From: Podarcis melisellensis
Taxonomy: Eukaryota
Direction: 5' to 3' (one strand)
Assembly: GCA_964234715.1 (NCBI GenBank)
Contig: OZ174280.1
Length of the DNA: 64,000 nt
Part shown: positions 10,801 to 51,385 of the stretch, in pieces
How the letters are laid out: the number at the start of each line of letters is the position of its first letter
How positions within the stretch are numbered: the stretch's first letter is position 1
Made by a program: the position numbers and the translations under genes
The notes under the pieces: generated by a model
Told to the model about the DNA's origin: nothing
The model's database searches: none
What the model saw: the letters and a program-made list of their open reading frames with translations, nothing else

Positions 10801-12131
10801 ATTTGCACAATTTTGCATTGCCCTGTAAATAGGTTGACCATTCAGAGATAAGCAGAATAGAGGAGAAGGCTGGAGGGACCAAAATGTTATGCAAATCATG
10901 AATATGCAGATTGGACATAGGAACTTAACATGAAGGACAGAAGTATAAAACACTTAGACTTTGTTCATACAACACTTTAAACCGTACTTCAACTAAATGT
11001 TGCTTTAAATGTGAACACACAGCATGTGCTGGTGCACGCTGCTAAAATCACAGACCATTTGCTCTTCTTCTACCCACCATGTGGGAAGGAAGAGTAGAAT
11101 GCTTGACTGTGTAGTCTATAAAAGCACAGGTTTGTCTTAATCCAGTAGGATGGAATGATTTCCGTAGCTAAAATATCCAGATAAGAACGCCAGCTGATGT
11201 GGGACTGGCTGGTAAGAAGAGATCTAACACTCTAGTTTTGCTTAAGTATCTGCAAACAAAAGGATGACATGAGAATAAATGAGGTTCTAGTATTTTAAGA
11301 AGCTTTTAAATGGTGTTCTGACTTTTCTCATATATTTGTCTGTCTTGCTTGCAACTCATGTTTAGCAAAGAACAGTACATCTTGCCTAAGATGTGAGGAA
11401 ATGTGCTGAGCTTAGGAGATATTTGCTGAAGTGCTGCTCTGGAGCATTTGGGGGTTTTCTGTACAGGCCTCATAATGGCCTCAGCTACACTTACCTGCAA
11501 GGGTAGTACAGCTACTGCAGATAGAATTACCTTTTTCTCTCACTGCTGAATTTTCTTTTTTCAAACTGTTCATCATAGTGATACTTTCATCTTATAATAG
11601 AGCAGTAAGCCACGGCAGGGTGTACATTGCTCATTTTCTGCACGCCTCAGGTATCTTCAATTGCCTGGGAGAGTTTCTGGCAGCTTCTTAATGTGCACCC
11701 TGGCATGGATTGGTGCAATTGCTTTGGCTTGTTAATTTTACATTCATTTGTTCATCATAGTCATTTAATAATCATATGTGCCTTTGGAAGATCAGGACAA
11801 CATGGGGGAAATTCAGTGAAAACTGAAATGAAAAATACTTGTCAGAGATTTGAGCTGCCTCTTCACTATTTTTGCTATGCTTATTGTTTGAGAGTCATAT
11901 ATACAGTCATATATTGTTTGAATGGGTGAGCTGCTGTGGAATTATGGACTCACGCCAATCTACATATATGTACAATTGCATGATCAAGCTTAGGAAAATA
12001 GGTTTGCCAGAGGAGTCACCTGTGCACAGCCCTAACTGGCTGGTGCTTGCAATATTGCAAACCAATTTCCTGTTTTGGAATTTTGTCCCATTGCTACCTG
12101 GTAACATGATTCTCTTTCTATTGTGTTTCAG

Positions 12132-12320
12132 AGAACCAGATCCCATCTGGCTTTCCAACCATAGACATGGGTCCACAGCTCAAGGTAGTAGAGAAGGCCC
12201 GCACTGCTACAATGCTCTGTGCTGCCAGCGGTAACCCTGACCCTGAAATATCCTGGTTCAAAGACTTTCTTCCTGTGGACACAGCCACTAGCAATGGCAG
12301 AATCAAACAGCTCCGTTCAG
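12132..12320 (+). CDS. PTPRF: PTPRF/LAR coding exon, first part of Ig2 ([30 protein letters not shown]...NGRIKQLRS), 189 nt, phase 1-1
   Basis: Acceptor tgtttcag and donor G|gtaaaa. The translation is near-identical to LAR as recalled ([44 protein letters not shown]). EKAR, EISW and ATSNG favour PTPRF over PTPRD/PTPRS. Confidence 0.97.
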
Positions 12321-14559
12321 GTAAAACAATAAAGTCTTCTCATTTCCTGACCCGACTCCACCCCAAATCTTTCTCTACAGGAAGCAACTGTGGTATTTTG
12401 TACCTAGATTGTGGGGTTCACTTTTTCACCCAACTTCTGCTACGTTTAAAACATTGTGTGATATGAAGAAAGGTTTGGGATTTGGGTGAGAGAGTGGATT
12501 TTAATAGTTAGGATATTTGTCCTTGTTAACTGAAGAAGCAGAGCCTTTTGAACATGCTTTCTTGTGTCCCATGAGCAAATGAGATTTCTTATCCATGACC
12601 TGGTAGCATATTGGATCAGAAATATATCACTCCAATTCCAATATAGGTTCCTGCTTTCAGGATAGTAAAACACATGTCACTAGTTGTTCCACTTAGACCA
12701 ACAGTCTGACAAAGAACATTTTGATTCATGAATAGTTACTCAGTTGGGCCAAAGACAGAAGCTCTTAGCCAGTTTCCAAAATGTGGAAAATCTGGATTTC
12801 TAAAATGCACAGGACATTCATGAACAGAAATCTTCCCTGCTGCAGAAATTTTCCCCATTAAATGAGAAAATTATAAGAATGAAGGTTGGGGAATGATGGG
12901 AGGTAGCCTACTCACCCAGCTGCCTCCCTCATGAATTTATGTTAACCTAATGGCAACTCTGAAGAGGGCTGCTTAAAACATTTCAGTGGCTTCATACGTT
13001 CTACAATTCTGCCTCTTTTGGTAACAGGGAAACTCTTCATATAGCCATGGTGCCAGAGCACAGTGTGGATAGGAAGTTAGGATAGTCCTTTTGAGGGAGA
13101 GAGAGAGAGATTGTGATTGGGATATCTGCCCCATTCTAATAAGCATACATGCCCATTAGCTGGCCTCTGATAACTACTTGTATGCAAAACTACTACCCCC
13201 TGCAAGCAATGTAACTCATGTGTGGTAGTGGTCGTGGCTCTTAAATTGATATATATCAGATTCTGCAGAAATGAGTTTATAATTAGCTCCTTGCTGACAC
13301 CTGTGAGACCTCAGTCTTGCAGTAGGCTCCCCCGCATATAGAGCAGTGAGCACTAATTACACTGATAAATTTACAGTTTATATAATTTCACAGTGACCTT
13401 TAGCGTAATCTCAATATGTTTGTGCTGAAAGAAAATATCATCCTCGTTAATTTAACTTGAAAGGCACTAAGCAGGCAGCATTAGGGAAGTGCATCCATGG
13501 ATACTTGCTCTTCATACTTACTAAATCAGCATCCTCATCTAGGAGGATTGCAGATGAGCTGGGCAACCCTTAGGCACATGCTGGGCTCTCAACAACATTC
13601 ACATCATGTGCACTCGCCTGCTGCTGAGCAAGCTTCAGGGAGGAAAAACCTGAGTTTAAAAACAAAACGTGTTCAGCACTACCGTCACGTCCAAAGTTTA
13701 TTTTGTTTTTCTTCATTGTAAGCAGTGTCTAAACTGAATTTCACCAGGGATTCAGAGTCCCCAGTTGTAGAAGACACTTGAATTTCCGGGAGGAGGGTAG
13801 AAATCAATGAGTAGCATATCTGCAGGCCTGAGAGAAAATTGATTAAGCTGTATGGAAGTAAATGAGGTTTATAGACTTGCATATAGTGAGCTCAAAAAAA
13901 AAGTTTAAGGTATTTATTGGTAGGAACATTGGAAGAGCTCACAAAGCAACATTAGTATATGCCGCTGATCCAAACTGCCTCTACTCAATGAAGCTTCCTT
14001 TCCAGCAAGTGTGTAGAGGACTATTGTAACAAAGTATTTCATTTTCATAATCAAAAGAGGGAACTTTATAAGTCTGCAGTTCATAGGGTTCTGAAACTGC
14101 ATAGAACAGATAATGACCCAATTCACATGTAGCACTAAGCCAAACAGAAGCTTAGCATGGAGGAGTCAAATCTCAAACTTATGTACAGATGTAATGCTAA
14201 GCTAAATCGTGGTTAATGCCTGGGCCATTTAGCAGCACCAGGGGAGGAATGCTTCATTGCAGTCTTCATTCTGGGAACCTGCATGTTTGCTTTTCATGCC
14301 AAGTTATGGTTTGGCTTTGCACGGCATGTGAACTGGGCCGTTCTATTGGTCAGCTGCTGAAGACTTGGTCCCTTCCAAACACTCTCCATTTCTGTGTAAT
14401 ATTTTCCCAGTATTCAGACTGCAGTATATCTCTGAACAAATGCAGTTGTTTTCCCACCAGAATCTATAAGATGTACTGTGCCATGTCAAATGGGATTGTC
14501 TGAGTGTCATGACCACCATTTGGATAGGCCCTGTGACACCACTAGTCTGAGAAGCTGAG

Positions 14560-18445: not shown

Positions 18446-20657
18446 GATGTCATTCCTTAACTATAATTTCCTATTTTCATCCAAACCAGGAAATTTTGGT
18501 TAACATCTTCAGAACAAACCAAGATATTAAACAGTTTTTCAAAGTTTAATTAACTGGTAACCATGGTTTCCTAGTTCAGATGAAATGGGAAACTATCGTT
18601 AATGGAAGACATCGTGGTTTGTTTTGCTTGAAGTGAGGAATGAAAGGACTGTATGCACAGCCAAATTCCTGCTCTTGTCTCTGCTTACTAAGGGTGCTTC
18701 CAGACAGAGGTTTATTGTGGAATTGCTGCTGAACCATGCAATTTTTTGTTGCAATCTCCACATGAAGTTGTTGTCACCAAAATGCCAAGCAATATATATA
18801 TATATATATTTAAATTAAATTTCCATACCCCTTACTGCGAAAAATAGATAAATAAAAATAACTTGTTATAAACCTAAAGTCACTGCGGGAGTGGAAGCCA
18901 GTTAGTGCATTAGCACTTTTTTGTGTGGTGATGGTGGCAGTTTGTCACATGTGGTGACATTTCAGTGGGTGGCCCCTAATGCGACGGTCTGCACACAGGT
19001 ACAGAAATACCTGCATACATGCACAGAGCAGAAGGCAATGGAGGGTGGTGGTGGAGTGTTGGACCGGAGGGACAACAAAACCATCTTCATATACACTCTG
19101 TTGAGGTCCTCTAATGTGGACAGCAACTGCAGAATAGCAATGATATCCATGACTGGGAGAGAGGTGGGGAACAGAAATATGTGGAAGCTAACATGCCAAA
19201 TGTGCACACTGAAATATCTGATCTGAGCATTATGTTTGCAATATAAGCCCCGTCCTGGAAGCACCCTAAGGCAGCACAATAATAAGTGTCATTAATTATT
19301 TAGGTTGGGTGGATGTCTTATAAGAACACTGGAAGCTGCATGCAGAGTCAGTCCATTGGTGCATTTAGCTGAATATAGTCTAAAATGACTAGCAGTTGGT
19401 CTCCAGGTTTCAAGCAGGAGTCTGGAGATGCCAAGAATTGGATAAACTGGCAGCTTCTGCATTCTTGTTCATGCTGAAAACATACTCCATTAGAATTAAA
19501 ACTTAGGATGTTGTCCAAATTTTTATTTTGTAGCATATGACTTACATCTTCATTTGGTGATCCTGACCACTATCATGGGAGTTCTGAATAATTTTTATTT
19601 TATGTCTTTTATTGCCATATTCTCTAACATATATTAGTGCATACTAAACCTCCAAAGAGATCTTGTTTCATTGCTTCAGAGCCACTATACAGCTCTGGCA
19701 AGGGCTATCTTACACTAAGATCTGGAGATTGGGTTTTAATAACATACCAGCTAAACTTTAGGAAATCCATTTTGAGTGTGTGTTGGGATTCCTTAGCTTT
19801 GCATCCATACAGAATTTTCAGTGACTAGGTGGATACAGAACAGCTCCAGATGATCTGTTTGGCAGCAACATAAAACAGAAGCTGCTTCAGTTAGCCAGGA
19901 ATCATTTCTGGACTCTGTTGTAAGAGATGCTTCTTGTCTCTTAGAGTGGGGGAAGGATAATGTAGATTACAGTGATAATTTGGAGATGGTTCGGGGGCAA
20001 GTAAGCACTCAGCAAATTTTTCTTTGGGGCATGAACCAATAACCCTCTTCTTCCTGTCAGTACAGCTTGTGAGCCATACAAGCTTCCGTGATGAGAATGG
20101 TTCTGTCAAGGGGGATGGAATGGTAGTTAGAAAAGCAGATAAATAGGCAGCAGATTTATTATGGTAGAGATTACCCGCAACTTCAGCAAACAGCATTAGC
20201 CTTCCTGATGCTTCACTCATCTGTGGACAAAAGCATCAGCAAGTATAAACCAGCCATAAAGCGAAAATGGAGTAATGTCATCTCGGCTGTGGAGAATGCT
20301 AAACGAAGCAGCTGGAACTGCTTCCTCTGATTAAAAGCTAGGGCTACTGCCTGAAGGAACATACACTAGGAGAGTGGGAGGGAAAGCGATAACAAGTGTA
20401 AATATTTTAATTACTCTTTAAGAGGCAAGTTAAACATGCTTAAAATCTGCCTTCTTTGTATTTACAGAAATCTTTGAGTGTCTTTCTTTGTTTCCCATTG
20501 GGTGATCAGTGCTGTGGATAATGGAATGTGGGGAGCGGTTAATCTCAGATACACAGCACTCATATGCTTACTGGTATTTATTGATCAATACACGGAACAT
20601 GATTTGACGCTCTGTGTCCTGTTTAACCCTCTCTTTCTATCTGTTTAAACTCCCCAG

Positions 20658-20666
20658 TTTTCTTTG
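20658..20666 (+). CDS. PTPRF: Candidate 9-nt microexon (meA3 position), adds V-F-F to Ig2
   Basis: tttaaactccccag|TTTTCTTTG|gtaagt. It has a pyrimidine tract, a perfect donor and phase 1-1, and lies upstream of meA6 where meA3 sits in PTPRD/PTPRS. TGCATG at 20742 and ACTAAC at 20763 lie downstream. Confidence 0.7.
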
Positions 20667-21730
20667 GTAAGTGCTTGGTGTTCAGATGTGCAAAATCTGC
20701 ATCAAACCAACACATACCATGAACTGCCTACAAATTAGATCTGCATGAATCTCCCTCACCTTACTAACAGCCTTCATTTGCACAAAATAAGACCAAGGGG
20801 ACAAAACTGGGGATCAGAGGAGTTTTCTGTCAGTTTACATACACGGGTCTCCCTCTGCACATCTGGACCATGCTAACAATAAAGCCCATGACTGAGCAAA
20901 CTGCACTTTTGCTTGACGTTTTGGAGCAGTTAGCTTTGTAACCAAGCCTTCCTTATAAGATGCACTCATAGCATGTGAACTTATTTTCTGCTCCCTTATA
21001 AGGAGGGTTGGAATCCCTTTCCTCTGCCTACTGTATAAATTATGCAGAGCGAGTCTGGTGCTCCATTGGTCCAAATAAAAACTAGAAGAAAGTGCTTTAG
21101 ATTTTTATTTGAAAAATCTGTTGTGTAGAATACCAATTTCTGGCCAGGGGGAACCTGGTGTAGGTTTTATTAAAGTTACCCCTGAATTCATCACTCAGTT
21201 TTTAAGTTTCAATTACATAATCAGATTTTGTCCCCAACGGTCCATGTAATCTTAAACCAAGAATGTGTGTCTCACCAACACCATATGCTTAATTTTTCTC
21301 CCCACACACACTCTCTCACAACACTCACTCTGGTACTCCCACAGCCCCACCTTCTGGCAGAATAAAAGGGCGCAGCACCCATATCCCAGTGGCTTCTCCA
21401 TCTCAGTTGTGACAATGAATGCTAGTGGTTTTGCTTAGGAGTCAGAGCCCTCCTTTGTGTAGGACCAGCAATATATTAATTGGGTAAAATGGGGCCAGAC
21501 TCTGTGTTCTTGGTAGCAGAGAGCTTTACTAACCACCTGAGGGCATCACTCTGACTTGTTACTGCGCATCCTTTATTTATTTTTATTTATTTATTTTTGT
21601 TTGTTCCTGTTGCGCTAATACAGATTCTAGCTTTGAAAAACTTTCTACTTTTTTATTTATAATTTTCTTCCTTTCCTCTTTGTACTAACGCTTCTCTCTA
21701 ATCTTATTTGCATTCAAATTACCTCACCAG

Positions 21731-21748
21731 GTGGTACACCAATCAGAG
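21731..21748 (+). CDS. PTPRF: 18-nt microexon meA6, adds GGTPIR to Ig2
   Basis: cctcaccag|GTGGTACACCAATCAGAG|gtaaga. The peptide matches the LAR-RPTP mini-exon A6. Consensus branch point TACTAAC at 21683-21689 and UGC at 21709. Confidence 0.95.
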
Positions 21749-22297
21749 GTAAGAATGCTGAACTGTGCCTCTAATTGTCATGTCACTCCATATCCTTTCT
21801 GCCATGCCCGTCTCCAACAGTATATCATCTCCAGCTATTCTTTCACTCCAAACTCTTGTCAGCTCACTTGCGCATCTGCCGTTCCTTCCTGTGTGTGCTT
21901 GTTTTTGTTTATTTTTAGTGTGGCGCCTTGTAGAATCATCCATCGCAGGTGTGCACAGGTCAAAGGGGGTTATTCAACGGGAGGTTTTCAGAGGGAGAAC
22001 GCTATCCCCATTCATGCCACAGAGGGCTCTGAGGTCTTGAATCTTTCAGATTCAGTCACCCTCTGGGGCACCACGTCCTGGCAGGTCTGAAATAGCTGCT
22101 GTGGCATGTTTTGAAGGATGTAACACTTTCACAAGAGAACAGTGAAGCCCTTCCTTCTGCATTATTGCTGACAGGAATTGAACTAATACAAAGGAAATAA
22201 ATTCTTAAAATGCCAGGCAAATCTAACTTGAGGAATAAGACTGGAGGACTTTCTTTGAGAGCTGAAGGTGCACCTTTTCATAAATTTAATAAATAAC

Positions 22298-22352: not shown

Positions 22353-25300
22353 TTGCTGGCCCTTCTCTGATATGAAGGTGAAGGGAGGAGATCTAAGATG
22401 CCAGCTCCACCCCTTCTGAAGCCTGACAAGAATTCATGGTGCACTGTAGCATAAAGATTTGTTGTGAGTAAATGAATCAGACACACATCTGGCTGCATTA
22501 AGTCTTCAGTTGTTCAATCCACCTCCAGTCTGACAGCTCTGCATTCCCAGACCTTGCTAGTTTCACTGCCTATATGTGCTAGTAACATTTCTAGCCTATA
22601 CACTCAAAGTAGTCCCATGAATTAATTTTAAGGTTGTAATCAGTACTATATAGTATGACTCTGATCTCTTGTGATTTCAGTTACTGCTGTTGACTGACCC
22701 CTGAATTTCCTGATAAACTTTTTAGCACCACTAAATTACACTATCTCATTTGTCCAATGCTTCCCTTCTTTCCTCCCCCTTCTCTCTCCACTGAATCACT
22801 GCTGGAAGTTAATAATCCAAGTCTTTGGAACTGATTCTGTTGCTGGGGGTTAATGTTTTCAGTTCTTGTTAAGTGATTTTGGAGCAAATGGGGGTTGCTG
22901 TTTCAAGTGTATTTGCATCAAGTTGCTTCTGTGAAAAATCTGGGTCAGGGGAAAAACTGTAAACCTCATTTTGATATGAATGGGTTTCTCTGTCATCTTC
23001 TCTCTGGAATGCTGCAAGATTGACAGCTGTGATGCCACACATTTTTAAAACCTTTTCTCTGCTTCTATCACAACTCTGAAAGCAAAATGACAGACTGAAT
23101 GCTAAGTAACCAAACAAGCCCTATCGTTGCCCATATCAGGTTGGGCCTTTCCCAGCACACAACTGCTATGTATTTCTTCTGTATCAACAAGTGAGGGCAT
23201 TAATGACTCAGCACCAGAACCGCCTGGATGTTCCGTACATCCTTTTTGAGGAAAGTGGACATATCTTTATAATGAGAATCATCCATCTCATAAAACATAA
23301 ATCTCCCTATCTGAGTCCTAATGAGGTATTTTAAGAATGTGTCTGACATTATTTAAAATGTATGTGTCCCGTTTGAATGTCAAAGATGACATTTCTGTAC
23401 GTGCCAAAAAGCCACCTCTTAGCATCTCATACAGGATTTGTCTCAGACTTACACCTTTTGTTAAACACACAGGCTATTGAGTCTCTAAAGATTACCAGAT
23501 GTGGTAGGTGAAGGCACTTTTGTGAAAGGGAGGTTATACTCACATAGTGGTCTGTACTGTGGTTCTCACTAAGGTAAGTTTGTTGCACTTCTGGGATCAA
23601 TTTGATGTGGAAATAAAACTAAATTATTTTTTTGTTTGCACAGCTAGTTGGATGTAAAATTTTCAGTGGTTCATGTTGAGAGGTGGATTCTATGTTAATG
23701 CATTGAAGGGCCAATCATACTTTCTGCCTATTGAATGGAAGTGTTATGGAAGACAGGCCGGAGAAGCAGGATAAAATTTTATTTCTGAAACTAACCTTTC
23801 CTTTGGGCCCTGCAGCCGCAGTTCTACTCTTGCTGTCCAGAGGTGCTGTCATTTTTCTAACTGAGAGCTCTGTGTTCACAAGGCATGTTGTCACTTTTAA
23901 CATTCCCCCTTTGCCTTTCAGGTGAGACCCAGGCTGAAAGGTCAGGGTGAGTTTTGATAGACTGTTCAGAGATGCATGGGTCTAGTTGGTGACTGGCAGG
24001 TTAGACAAGAGGATGGATGAATGGATGTGTATTTTGAAGGATGGCTAGTAAGCAAAAATAAAAGCTGCTTTAGGGGAAGTGACTTGACACATGTCCCCTT
24101 TCTCAAAGTTCAAATCAAGTTTTCTATGTTGTTATAGAATGCAATTAAATATTATGAGAAATATTTCTCCTGGAAGCAGAAAATGCTGGCATGTCATGGA
24201 CCTCTGATGCTTCAGATTTTGCCATTGCAGGTACATGAGAAGCAGTGGAAGTGTTAAAGGGAAGACAGCATTTTAAATGGTCCTTTTCTTCACAAAATAA
24301 ATTGGAATCAATTGGAAAGCGTTCGTACCCGTTGACTGGATAGACTTTCCTCCAGTGTGAGTTTCACCACTGCAAAGCAGAAGGACAATTACTTTGAAAC
24401 AGAAAGATCTGATAATTGGCAGAGAAGGGCTGAGAAACTTTTTATCTAATACTTTTACTATTGCCAAAATTTCACGCTGTTTTGCCCTTAGCACCCTCTT
24501 TGGCAGCTGCTTTGCTTCTCTTGGGATCTGCATATCTCAATCTCTCTTTTTCTGTATCTGGAGTACAAGAGGAGTACAAGAGGAAAGTGCATGAATGCCA
24601 GATGCATGATACACAAAAGGAAGGGGAATCAGTGATTGAGCTGTATTCCTGCATTTGCCCTTGTGTGCCGCTCAGTTTCATAGCTCTCCGTCAGTGACTG
24701 CCTCACTTGTATATATCACAGAAACCCAGCTTCATTCCAGGTCCCAGCCATGCCAATCATCATGCTCAGGAAGAAGAGGCACAGCTGAACAGGAACATAA
24801 TGAGCATCAGTAATAACATCACTGTGGTAGTTTTGTTTTTATTTATTTAGCTTATTTGGCCGTAAAAAATAAATAAATTTGAGATGGGGGCATTTGGCTG
24901 CCATTCCAGGTAGCACCTAGGATTATTAGAGCTGAAAATCTAAGCGGCATGTTAAGTAGAGTATTGATATATAAATCATGATCCAGAAAATTTTGTGCAC
25001 CATTTTACTCTACTGACAACTGCAGAGCTGCAAGAATCCAGTGTGAGATTGTGAAAGTAGACTTTTGCCTTCCTCGTCAAATCCTCAAATTTATATAAAC
25101 ATAAATTTAACTGAACACAAGTGAAGCTTCTGAGTAAACATTCATAGGATTGCTCTGTTAATGAGACAGTCAACATTTTTCATTAACTTTGCTGGCAAAG
25201 CAAGGCAGATCCTGCCAAAACCAGAACACTTCTATGTTCCATAGATTAGACCTACCTGCAGAAATGTAAGGTGAGAAGGTATCTGTGGATTTATTTATTT

Positions 25301-26450: not shown

Positions 26451-27915
26451 CAGCAACGTAGCAGCAGCAGTAGTAGTATTGGTAGTAGTAGATGTTTTCC
26501 TGGTCTGGGTTACAAAACATTAAAAACAAACCTGACAATGCTGCTGCTGCTGTATAAAGAACAGTCAACTTATTAGTATTATATGTGAAAGCACCTTAAG
26601 AGTGGCAGAAGGAAGGCTTTTCTGGCTGGCGTTCCCTGCACTGCCCCCTGCCAGCCCCAGCGTAACAATAGGAAGGGCTCCCTACATCATTTTTATTACA
26701 TAGCAAAGCTCAGTGAGGTTCATTTTTTCTCTCCCTGACATATAGACTTAGGCTACAGTCTCAATTTATCCTTCTAAATAATGTAAGTGGCGGCAGTTGA
26801 TTCACATTAGTTTTCCTTCTGTTGCAATGATATGAAAACTGAATTTGACCTCCGTTCCTTGAAGTGGGAAGAGCGGAGACAGCAATTTTGGCTTCTGTTC
26901 ACAGTGCTGTTTTCTCTGGCAAATGGAAATGGGTTCAGACTCTGACAAGCAGACAGGTTAATGCTTTTTCTCTTGGTTCAGGTGTGTATGTGTTTCTGAG
27001 CAAATGCCCTCTTCTGCCATCTCTGGAATCTCAACTTCTGGAAGAACCAAGAAAGTCTTTGCTACACAGGAAGTATGGAGGTTCTGATCTAGCAATGTGA
27101 CATCAAGGCTACTTCTACATTCACCCTTTGCTTATTTTCCCCTTCACCATTGTCATCCTTACTTCCTCCACAAACTAGATGCAGCCCATTTTAAATGATT
27201 TCCAGAGGAAACAACTGGACAGGGTTCAGCACTCATCTATGATGGACGAGATAAGGAACAAGAATGCTATTCAAGCCGTATTTGTCCCTAATGTGGGTTG
27301 GGCTGATTTCAGGTTTAAATTGGATTTAACACAAGTTGTACCATTTTCTGATGCTGACTTATTAATTGTATTGATGGTTGTATTGAGGTCTTTATCATAA
27401 AGGAGTAGTCTTCAGAAGCAGAGATGCAAAGGACTTCTCAGGGTACAATCTTGTAATCCTTTTGGTTTGTAGGTTTCTAAGGTTCTGTTATTCGTACTTT
27501 ATGGGGAAGTGAAGGTTTAATTTTAGAGAATCGAATTGATAAATAAAGGAAAGAGAGTAGTGCACCAAGATGCAAATTGGTTGTGTGAAGATGGTATTTG
27601 TTGTGATATTTCAACGAATAAACCTGAATTCTTTTGAAAGTTTCTGTGCTTGGTAGAAATGGATGTATTCTGTAAGAAGTGAATTGAAAAGGTATCAGTA
27701 ACTGTTTGCCTGTGCAGCTATAAAAACTGGACACAGCAGGTGCTTTTTAGCAACACCAAGTGAAAGTGGTGTTTGGTGGACCCTCTGAGAAGTGCCATGC
27801 CACACATTTACCAGAAACCCTTTGTGTCCTAAGTTAGGGACACAGAGCAAAAATTTACATGTTTTGTAAATATATTATTGTAACCAATATTGTCTGTGTT
27901 CTATTTTCCACATAG

Positions 27916-28026
27916 GAGCTCTACAGATTGAGAACAGTGAAGAGTCAGACCAAGGCAAATATGAATGTGTCGCCACGAACAGTGCTGGGACCCGTTACTC
28001 TGCTCCAGCCAACCTTTATGTGCGAG
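27916..28026 (+). CDS. PTPRF: PTPRF exon, end of Ig2 ([37 protein letters not shown]), 111 nt
   Basis: ccacatag acceptor and G|gtaaag donor. My own translation (absent from the ORF track) matches LAR. Confidence 0.97.
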
Positions 28027-29358
28027 GTAAAGTTGGAGAAGGCAAACTTCCATCCCTTTCTACCTTCTCTTCCGTGTCTACACCTTCTCTAATGACACAT
28101 GAGACGTTGCAGTGAGAGGTTACCTTTATGATGTATTGTAAATGATGAAACCTAAATGCCCAACCAGTCACTGAGTTCAAGTCTTGGAAAGTCAATTCTT
28201 GCCACCATTTTTTTCTTTATTTCATTTTTTTTGCCAGAGATTCTTTAATGGTCAGACTGGTTAAACCACTGTCATAAAGGGGGCAGAAGTTCATGTTTAA
28301 TTATTTGTATATTTTGTTAAACAAAAGCATGTTGGGGGGCTTTGTGAAATTAGTGGGTCTCTCTTTTTCTCACTGCCACCCTTTTTGGGGAGGGTTTATT
28401 TATTTATTTTAATGAGATAAAGCTTTGAGCATTCATTTCATAAGCTTGACTTGTTCTCTTGCAGGTGAGTTGGTGCATCATGTTGACTCTGGAATAGCAT
28501 GTTAGTTTCCATAAGCTCTCTTGGTCAACACCTTGTCAGCAACGGGGATTATTGCAGAAGCTATTACAATAGCTTCCATTCCTGCTGAGAATCAGCTTCA
28601 GTTTGTTACATGAAGCCACTTTGCCAGGCTGTTTTCTTAACTTGTTATTATTCCCAGATCTCAAAGTCTTTTCACTCACTACGTTAAATTTGATACAGAA
28701 TTTTGTGTTTGGAGAGCAAAGAGTTTGGTACTTTATTAAAAGCTGATGAGTTTTCTGTTCTGTTTTACATGGGGACAATGTGTGTTCTCCTTGGCCAGAC
28801 CTTGTATTAGCCAGGGATATTAATGTAAGACACCCCTTGGAGGTGTGTTTTGGTACTTACATAACAGTGGGAAAGAAGAAGAGTGTCAGTTTGGTGCCTT
28901 TGACTGGTTGGCAGTTAAACTCATATATTATTCCTTCTTAGGTCCTGGATCTCAATAACTACCCATTTAGAAATACTGTTTCCATCTTCATTCCTTCCTC
29001 TGTCTTTTCTCTTTTCTCTCTTTCTCTGTCTCTCCACTTGACCGTTGCTTCCTAATACTCATGCACACGCCTTTTATTTGTGGGGTGGAGGGGAGCTGCC
29101 TTAACCAAGCTAAGGAAGAGTTATTCCCAGGAGAAGCCAAAATGACTTACTGTGTGATTGCTTCTAGGTCTCTCGGTTACTCTCATTGTGTTCAGCACTC
29201 ATTTTCTACAGGTGCCGTTTCATCTTGCAGAACAATTTCAACATACAAATCTGTACGATGCTGAAGTTTCAGATAGTCTCAGAACTCTTTATCTGTGCAG
29301 CAGAAATGCCCATTTCTCAAGCATAATGTGCTTATTATTGACCTTATATACCCTGTAC

Positions 29359-51079: not shown

Positions 51080-51385
51080 CCCCTTCTGCCCCACCCCAAG
51101 AGGTCGTGTGTGTAAGCACCAGCTCCACCTCTATCCGGGTAAGTTGGGTACCACCACCGGCTCAGAGCCGCAATGGAGTCATCACACAGTATTCTATCGC
51201 ATACCAAGCGGTGGAAGGAGAGGACACCAGCAAGCGTGTGGTTGAGGGCATTGGACACGAGCATTCAAGCTGGGAGATCAACAGCCTGGAGAAATGGACA
51301 GAGTACAAAGTGTGGGTGAGGGCTCACACAGACGTGGGTCCTGGGCCAGAGAGCATCCCGGTCTGGGTTCGCACTGATGAAGACG
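51080..51385 (+). CDS. PTPRF: PTPRF exon, FNIII-4 (TPSAPPQEVVCVS...VRTDED), 306 nt, symmetric phase 1-1
   Basis: tatccctag acceptor and G|gtaggt donor. Contains LEKWTEYKVWVRAHTDVGPGPES. Confidence 0.97.

Follow-up and report, generated by a model that had tools for sequence, protein, structure and literature searches.

The subject of this report is a candidate exon of 9 nucleotides (nt) in a 64,000-nt stretch of DNA from the lizard Podarcis melisellensis (contig OZ174280.1), which we call the window. The window carries a gene of the LAR-RPTP family, and by the fit of its FN3 exon (51082-51384) this gene is PTPRF, which encodes LAR: compared with PDB, the exon matches the PTPRF structure 6tpw at 2e-67 and PTPRD at 4e-44, and the assignment follows from this better fit. 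The Ig2 exon does not discriminate between the three LAR-type paralogues. The candidate exon lies at 20658-20666, inside the intron of 15.6 kb that splits the Ig2 domain, and, like its splice partners, its splice signals and meA6, it is read on the plus strand.

The splice partners on the two sides of this intron are well defined. Upstream lies Ig2 exon a, which the reads of RNA run X22 cover exactly at 12132-12320, and which ends in CGTTCAG before the donor gtaaaac and, in translation, in ...IKQLRS. Downstream lies Ig2 exon b at 27916-28027, with the peptide (G)ALQIENSEE..., and its first 30 letters are the consensus of the loose ends of RNA reads. In X22, as in one contig of X12, AAATACCAGTGCCAAACTGACAGTGTTAGA precedes position 12130 at the left end of exon a; with these letters the Ig1 exon before it ends, an exon that was not seen among the long open frames in the initial 12 kb of the window. 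Between the two Ig2 exons, 1,064 nt 3' of the candidate, stands the known microexon meA6 (21731-21748; ag, then GTGGTACACCAATCAGAG, then gtaaga), whose 18 nt encode GGTPIR and are the same in bonefish. The intronic flanks of meA6 are conserved to an unusual depth from bonefish to lizard and mammal: around it (window 21508-21990; L013:14000-14121 in bonefish; L015:8833-8925 in a mammal) some 90-125 nt align at 85% with bonefish and at 92% with the mammal.

The candidate itself reads ctctctttctatctgtttaaactccccag on the intron side, with the acceptor context ccccag, then TTTTCTTTG, then gtaagtgc. A tract of 78% pyrimidine with the acceptor AG occupies 20627-20657, and the donor site, G followed by GTAAGTG, occupies 20667-20673. 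Across the junctions the codons would be G+TT (V), TTC (F) and TTT (F), followed by G+GT (G), so that the predicted peptide with both small exons is ...IKQLRS-VFF-GGTPIR-GALQ.... Both small exons are in phase 1-1 and are multiples of three, and the frame stays open for the 9 nt with or without meA6. Downstream follow TGCATG at 20742-20747, a motif of the RBFOX type 76 nt into the intron, whose role we take from the known motif, and TACTAACAG at 20762-20770, a branch-point or QKI-type motif in which TACTAAC (20762-20768) is followed directly by AG. The original prediction, which was made from the letters of the window, had placed here an in-frame 9-nt exon between AG and GT, about 1.06 kb 5' of meA6 and followed by TGCATG and ACTAAC; codon arithmetic and the measured positions agree with it on every one of these points.

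How unusual is such an arrangement? The intron holds 55 sites of the form AG-N9-GT, and just the one at 20658-20666 combines a pyrimidine tract (at least 65%), a near-consensus donor and an open frame. Applied to each orthologous intron, the same filter returns the same site and almost nothing else. The stricter pattern YYNCAG-N9-GTAAGT has one match on both strands of the whole window where 0.11 are expected, and at least one match is found in 10 of 100 shuffled windows. The motif by itself is thus mildly unusual and weak evidence; it is the conservation that is strong evidence.

For this comparison, orthologous introns were obtained through gene calls containing Ig2 exon a. They come from the skink Lerista edwardsae (L001), the iguanian Phrynosoma platyrhinos (L002), a further squamate (L012), the passerine Pitangus sulphuratus (L014) and two contigs (L007, L011) which we take as birds because they align with Pitangus end to end at 81-85%; together with the window this makes seven sauropsid sequences. 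Among the window, Lerista and Phrynosoma the three-way identity is 92-100% over an island at 20414-20812, and 30-60% a few hundred bases away; in alignable flanking intron the same three squamates differ by about 20% or more. The peak is at least as high as that around the proven meA6 exon. Between squamates and birds, whose last common ancestor lived roughly 280 million years ago, the island is 83-85% identical, the coding Ig2 exon a is 82-86% identical, and the bulk of the intron cannot be aligned at all. The pyrimidine tract, the acceptor AG, GTAAGTG, TGCATG and TACTAAC are invariant in all seven sequences, and the nine letters TTTTCTTTG recur without change in the three birds as well as in the window, Lerista and Phrynosoma. 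Substitutions in the island follow no 3-base periodicity and there is no long open reading frame; the island is therefore not part of a larger coding exon. Its invariant runs extend up to 36 nt. These patterns support strong purifying selection on the candidate element.

In L012 alone the exon differs. There it reads TTAACGTTG (L012:7568-7576) and would encode V-N-V, three of nine bases being changed. The two splice sites are intact, the frame is open, and some 300 nt around the exon are 95% identical. The three changes fall within five bases (TTTTCTTTG to TTAACGTTG) of a single contig, and could go back to a single complex mutation, to positive selection or to a fault in the assembly.

The island may also have a structure. 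When 79 nt around the exon were folded for the lizard, one bird and L012, each alone, the same fold was obtained in all three, at -22.3, -20.4 and -22.3 kcal/mol and with z-scores of -2.3, -4.0 and -2.5, respectively. In this predicted hairpin (20655-20726) a 5' arm composed of CAGUUU, UGGUA, GUG and UUGGU covers the acceptor AG, the ends of the exon and the donor. It pairs with ACCAA, CAC, UACCA and GAACUG at 20706-20726, within a 25-nt run (20706-20730) that is the second-longest invariant run in the seven sauropsids; a small apical stem, CAGAU with AUCUG, completes the fold. The apical loop varies between bird and lizard and its stem does not. Paired positions make up 48 of the 79 columns and contain 3 of the 16 variable ones (P = 2e-4; 6e-4 to 8e-4 if the splice-site consensus, or the whole exon with the donor, is set aside). 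The substitution pattern is consistent with the hairpin, which we regard as plausible. Donor sites gated by a local hairpin are familiar from MAPT exon 10 and from TSL2 of SMN2 exon 7. The predicted stem is similar in covering the donor, although here it covers the whole exon in addition, and, unlike those two cases, it is a prediction from folding energy and the placement of substitutions. Such a stem, if it exists, would mask the donor, so that the exon would tend to be skipped as long as the stem stays closed.

Outside the sauropsids the picture is different. The mammalian contig L015, which we take as non-human because its Ig2 peptide reads DPSTSNG and not DPATSNG as in primate, cat and pig, has a meA6 exon for GGSPIR, the flanks of which match those of the lizard at 92%. 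In the syntenic place, about 370 nt 5' of this exon, stands what looks like a relic of the candidate: tctgtctgcctaaatgccctGG, TTTGTTTGG, then gtaagtgcc. Aligned to the sauropsid core it scores 34, where shuffled sequences have a mean of 20.9, a standard deviation of 2.6 and a maximum of 32. Its acceptor AG has become GG and one base has been inserted; the donor is kept and the remainder of the island is lost. The bonefish ptprf locus (L013) contains no island and no acceptable AG-N9-GT, although its meA6 is identical in nucleotides to that of the lizard, and the longest frog, coelacanth and sturgeon isoforms among the retrieved proteins have a six-residue insert at most. The simplest reading of these sequences is that the element was present in the amniote ancestor, has been held tightly in sauropsids and has decayed in at least one mammal. 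Birds and squamates have it in common. A mammalian relic without an acceptor fits the reports that rodent LAR has the six-residue meA alone (PMC4578660, PMC10883964).

Some claims of the original prediction have to be modified accordingly. The exon does not belong to this lizard in particular, since it is found letter for letter in birds. The prediction regarded the two-part meA as ancestral: by way of the decayed relic in one mammal this status appears to reach back to amniotes; the bonefish locus shows nothing that corresponds, and the longest frog isoforms retrieved have the six-residue insert alone. As for the alignment of this intron across vertebrates that it had proposed, the arrangement AG-9nt-GT is kept in the seven sauropsids, while the acceptor is lost in the mammal and nothing comparable is found in bonefish.

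The most instructive comparison is with the paralogues. In PTPdelta, meA consists of meA3, ESI, plus meA6, GGTPIR, and the Ig2 loop that carries it connects two strands contacting IL1RAPL1 and IL-1RAcP (PMC4423211). In the rodent work, LAR is given a meA of six residues and PTPsigma and PTPdelta one of nine, as the legend to Figure 2 of PMC4578660 has it; mouse Ptprf meA is likewise treated as a single microexon where Ptprd and Ptprs have meA1 and meA2 (PMC10883964). The division of PTPRD meA into ESI and GGTPIR and the six residues of mammalian LAR, both stated in the original prediction, are therefore matters of record (PMC4423211, PMC4578660, PMC10883964).

The candidate resembles PTPRD meA3 in its 9 nt, in its phase 1-1 and in its place, 5' of an 18-nt GGTPIR exon in the Ig2-splitting intron after ...KQLRS; PTPRD meA3 can be used alone or with meA6 (giving meA9), and the frame of the PTPRF candidate would permit both. 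The residues are E-S-I or E-S-F in the one and V-F-F (V-N-V in L012) in the other, hydrophobic at the third position in both. PTPdelta meA3 is documented in mammals, whereas the PTPRF candidate is known from sequence alone and appears broken in the mammal examined. PTPRS, with its meA1 and meA2, has the same two-part architecture as the candidate with meA6 (a retrieved teleost PTPRS-like protein reads RS-EAI-ESTPIR); it is, however, a different paralogue with an acidic first residue and with documented expression (PMC10883964). With mammalian LAR meA (GGSPIR) the candidate shares the gene and the insertion point, where bonefish, lizard and mammal have all conserved the 18-nt exon together with its flanks; the difference is that the rodent work gives the six-residue insert alone (PMC4578660, PMC10883964) and that L015 has the 9-nt relic without an acceptor. 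In place, size, phase, open frame and conserved acceptor and donor the candidate therefore looks like a meA3 exon of the LAR-RPTPs. As the letters stand, its likeness to the ESI and ETF exons of PTPRD and PTPRS is one of position, the shared residue being just the hydrophobic third. It also has features of neural microexons, namely a length of at most 27 nt divisible by three, highly conserved flanking introns and a downstream UGCAUG, the one at 20742-20747.

The RNA at hand says little on the matter. Reads of three runs of the species were aligned at Ig2 exon a and their loose ends past 12320 were examined. PTPRF reads were found in one run only, X22, whose tissue is unspecified, and were zero in the other two. 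In X22 all 88 junction reads past 12320 continue with AGCTCTACAGATTGAGAACAG..., the letters with which the exon at 27916 begins. An RNA contig, too, joins 12320 directly to 27916. The candidate and the long-established meA6 are thus skipped alike, and because a proven exon is skipped too, X22 tests the candidate neither way. Among the best 120 of 8000 matches to frog PTPRF, almost all are free of inserts and 11 contain GGTPIR or GGTPIK; a nine-residue insert is absent from these 120, but since the ranking and the clustering at 90% hide isoforms, this is no evidence of absence. Most of what exon-sized queries returned were gene calls in which the reading continues from the exon into the intron. 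One such call, P0270 with GKSFLFGGTQ, was considered as a spliced form and rejected, being intron read-through in a skink-like genome.

In our opinion, the element at 20658-20666 is best understood as a PTPRF cassette microexon of the meA3 type whose default is skipping and whose inclusion would be confined to certain cells, probably neurons; judged from the genomic comparison, we put the probability of this at roughly 0.7. Spliced in, alone or with meA6, it would lengthen the Ig2 loop, at the point where ...KQLRS meets GALQIE..., by three residues, V-F-F in most sauropsids. The default skipping would come about because the exon and its donor are, by prediction, locked in the conserved hairpin with the invariant run further 3'. 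For the exon to be included, factors specific to a cell type would have to act on conserved flanking sequence, such as TGCATG and the region upstream, rich in pyrimidines and in UWAA, and this would most likely take place in neurons, as with other LAR-RPTP microexons. That the exon is spliced in, where this happens, that the hairpin gates it and that ligand binding is affected is what we infer from these features. On the fuller statement, that birds and squamates have kept, for some 280 million years or more, a hairpin-gated microexon in PTPRF which places V-F-F, uncharged and aromatic, in the Ig2 loop of LAR that contacts ligands, and that at least one mammal lost it by an acceptor mutation, we lean only slightly to the positive side.

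Several observations weigh against the microexon. X22, from which meA6 is missing as well, contains no read that includes it. VFF occurs in none of 446 retrieved LAR-RPTP proteins, a set whose ranking favoured insert-free isoforms and which was collapsed at 90% identity. The peptide is not of the type E-[S/T/A]-[I/F]: it is V-F-F or V-N-V, against ESI, ESF and EAI in the paralogues, and with V-N-V in L012 the peptide is not a conserved one. There is no TGC in 20567-20657, the 90 nt 5' of the acceptor, and hence no UGC enhancer of the SRRM4 type. The pairs of the hairpin never vary in the seven sauropsids, and so offer no compensatory changes. Finally, the lack of any synonymous change outside L012 points to constraint at the level of RNA, which would be expected of a non-coding splicing element as well. 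The main rival is a pseudo-exon that acts in splicing control alone, a decoy whose pair of splice sites recruits U2AF and U1 and, with the hairpin, steers the use of the neighbouring meA6 or the removal of the 15.6-kb intron, while the 9 nt never or hardly enter mature mRNA. Selection on nucleotides rather than codons, with no synonymous change in six taxa, would suit such a decoy, as would flanks conserved as much as the exon, junction reads of X22 that lack the 9 nt, and the behaviour of L012, which alone altered the exon, replacing two residues by radically different ones although its splice sites stayed intact. Yet conserved flanks and nucleotide-level constraint are usual for true neural microexons too, and it speaks against a decoy that size, phase, open frame and place match the proven 9-nt exon of two paralogues (PMC4423211, PMC10883964). 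Moreover, the mammal that lacks the acceptor still keeps and uses meA6, with flanks 92% conserved, so that meA6 is independent of the element. We consider a decoy unlikely.

A little less likely still, in our view, is a conserved non-coding element of another kind, such as an enhancer or a structured intronic RNA, in which AG...GTAAGT would be incidental. An island of 400 nt with invariant runs up to 36 nt would not surprise in such an element, nor would a hairpin thermodynamically better than shuffled sequences, and the motif alone has a chance of about 10% of turning up in a window of this size. However, nothing in Rfam comes near threshold for the island (best E-values 0.4, at one third of the gathering score), the peak of conservation is centred on the splice-site pair, the element occupies the intron in which the paralogues have their 9-nt exon, and like that exon it precedes meA6, and in the mammal the whole island decayed along with the loss of the acceptor. 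The same 10 of 100 shuffles could be used to argue for a functionless look-alike. Chance is contradicted by an identity between birds and squamates which inside the island is that of coding sequence, amid intron that cannot be aligned, and we regard it as very improbable. A PTPRF microexon thus remains the explanation that we prefer.

As to novelty, our search of the literature returned no paper with VFFGGTPIR or related strings, the bird and lizard isoforms of RefSeq and Ensembl being outside that search; LAR is credited with the six-residue meA alone (PMC4578660, PMC10883964). The element is probably a real third piece of the PTPRF splice code, one that has so far gone undescribed. Should automated bird or lizard annotations already carry the isoform, the exon would not be new and the comparative picture still would.

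The meA and meB inserts of the LAR-RPTPs set the choice of postsynaptic partners, among them IL1RAPL1, IL-1RAcP, Slitrks, SALMs and TrkC. To our knowledge, all work on this choice was done in rodents, whose LAR is assumed to possess the six-residue meA only. With a third insert, a hydrophobic one, birds and reptiles would have twice as many LAR Ig-domain isoforms, and if it is real, the synaptic splice code of LAR differs in kind between sauropsids and those mammals where it has been worked out. It would also show in nature how one element of a splice code disappeared from at least one mammal, and the predicted hairpin offers a concrete model for the silencing of a 9-nt exon and its later activation. 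What makes the element interesting is that sauropsids and mammals differ in it and that a hairpin may gate it, not anything special about this lizard.

Further conserved sequence is found in the intron. At 20400-20455, about 200-260 nt 5' of the candidate, there is a dense conserved cluster of UWAA motifs (TAAATATTTTAATTAC...TTTAAG...GTTAAAC...TTAAAA), which presumably resembles the binding sites of splicing factors of the STAR family. Some 1.1 kb of intron 3' of meA6 (22436-23535) can still be aligned between birds and squamates, with an identity of about 69%, in contrast to the intron 5' of the island, which is mostly unalignable between them. A block at 13344-13533 is conserved between squamates and birds at 70-72% identity, and another, at 26651-27013, has an identity of 92% with Lerista and of 73% with Pitangus. 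A last one, at 21916-21965, is 90% identical in three lizards, and the Lerista gene model P0058 reads it as coding after GGTPIR (VWRLVESSIAGVH...), which is probably a misprediction.

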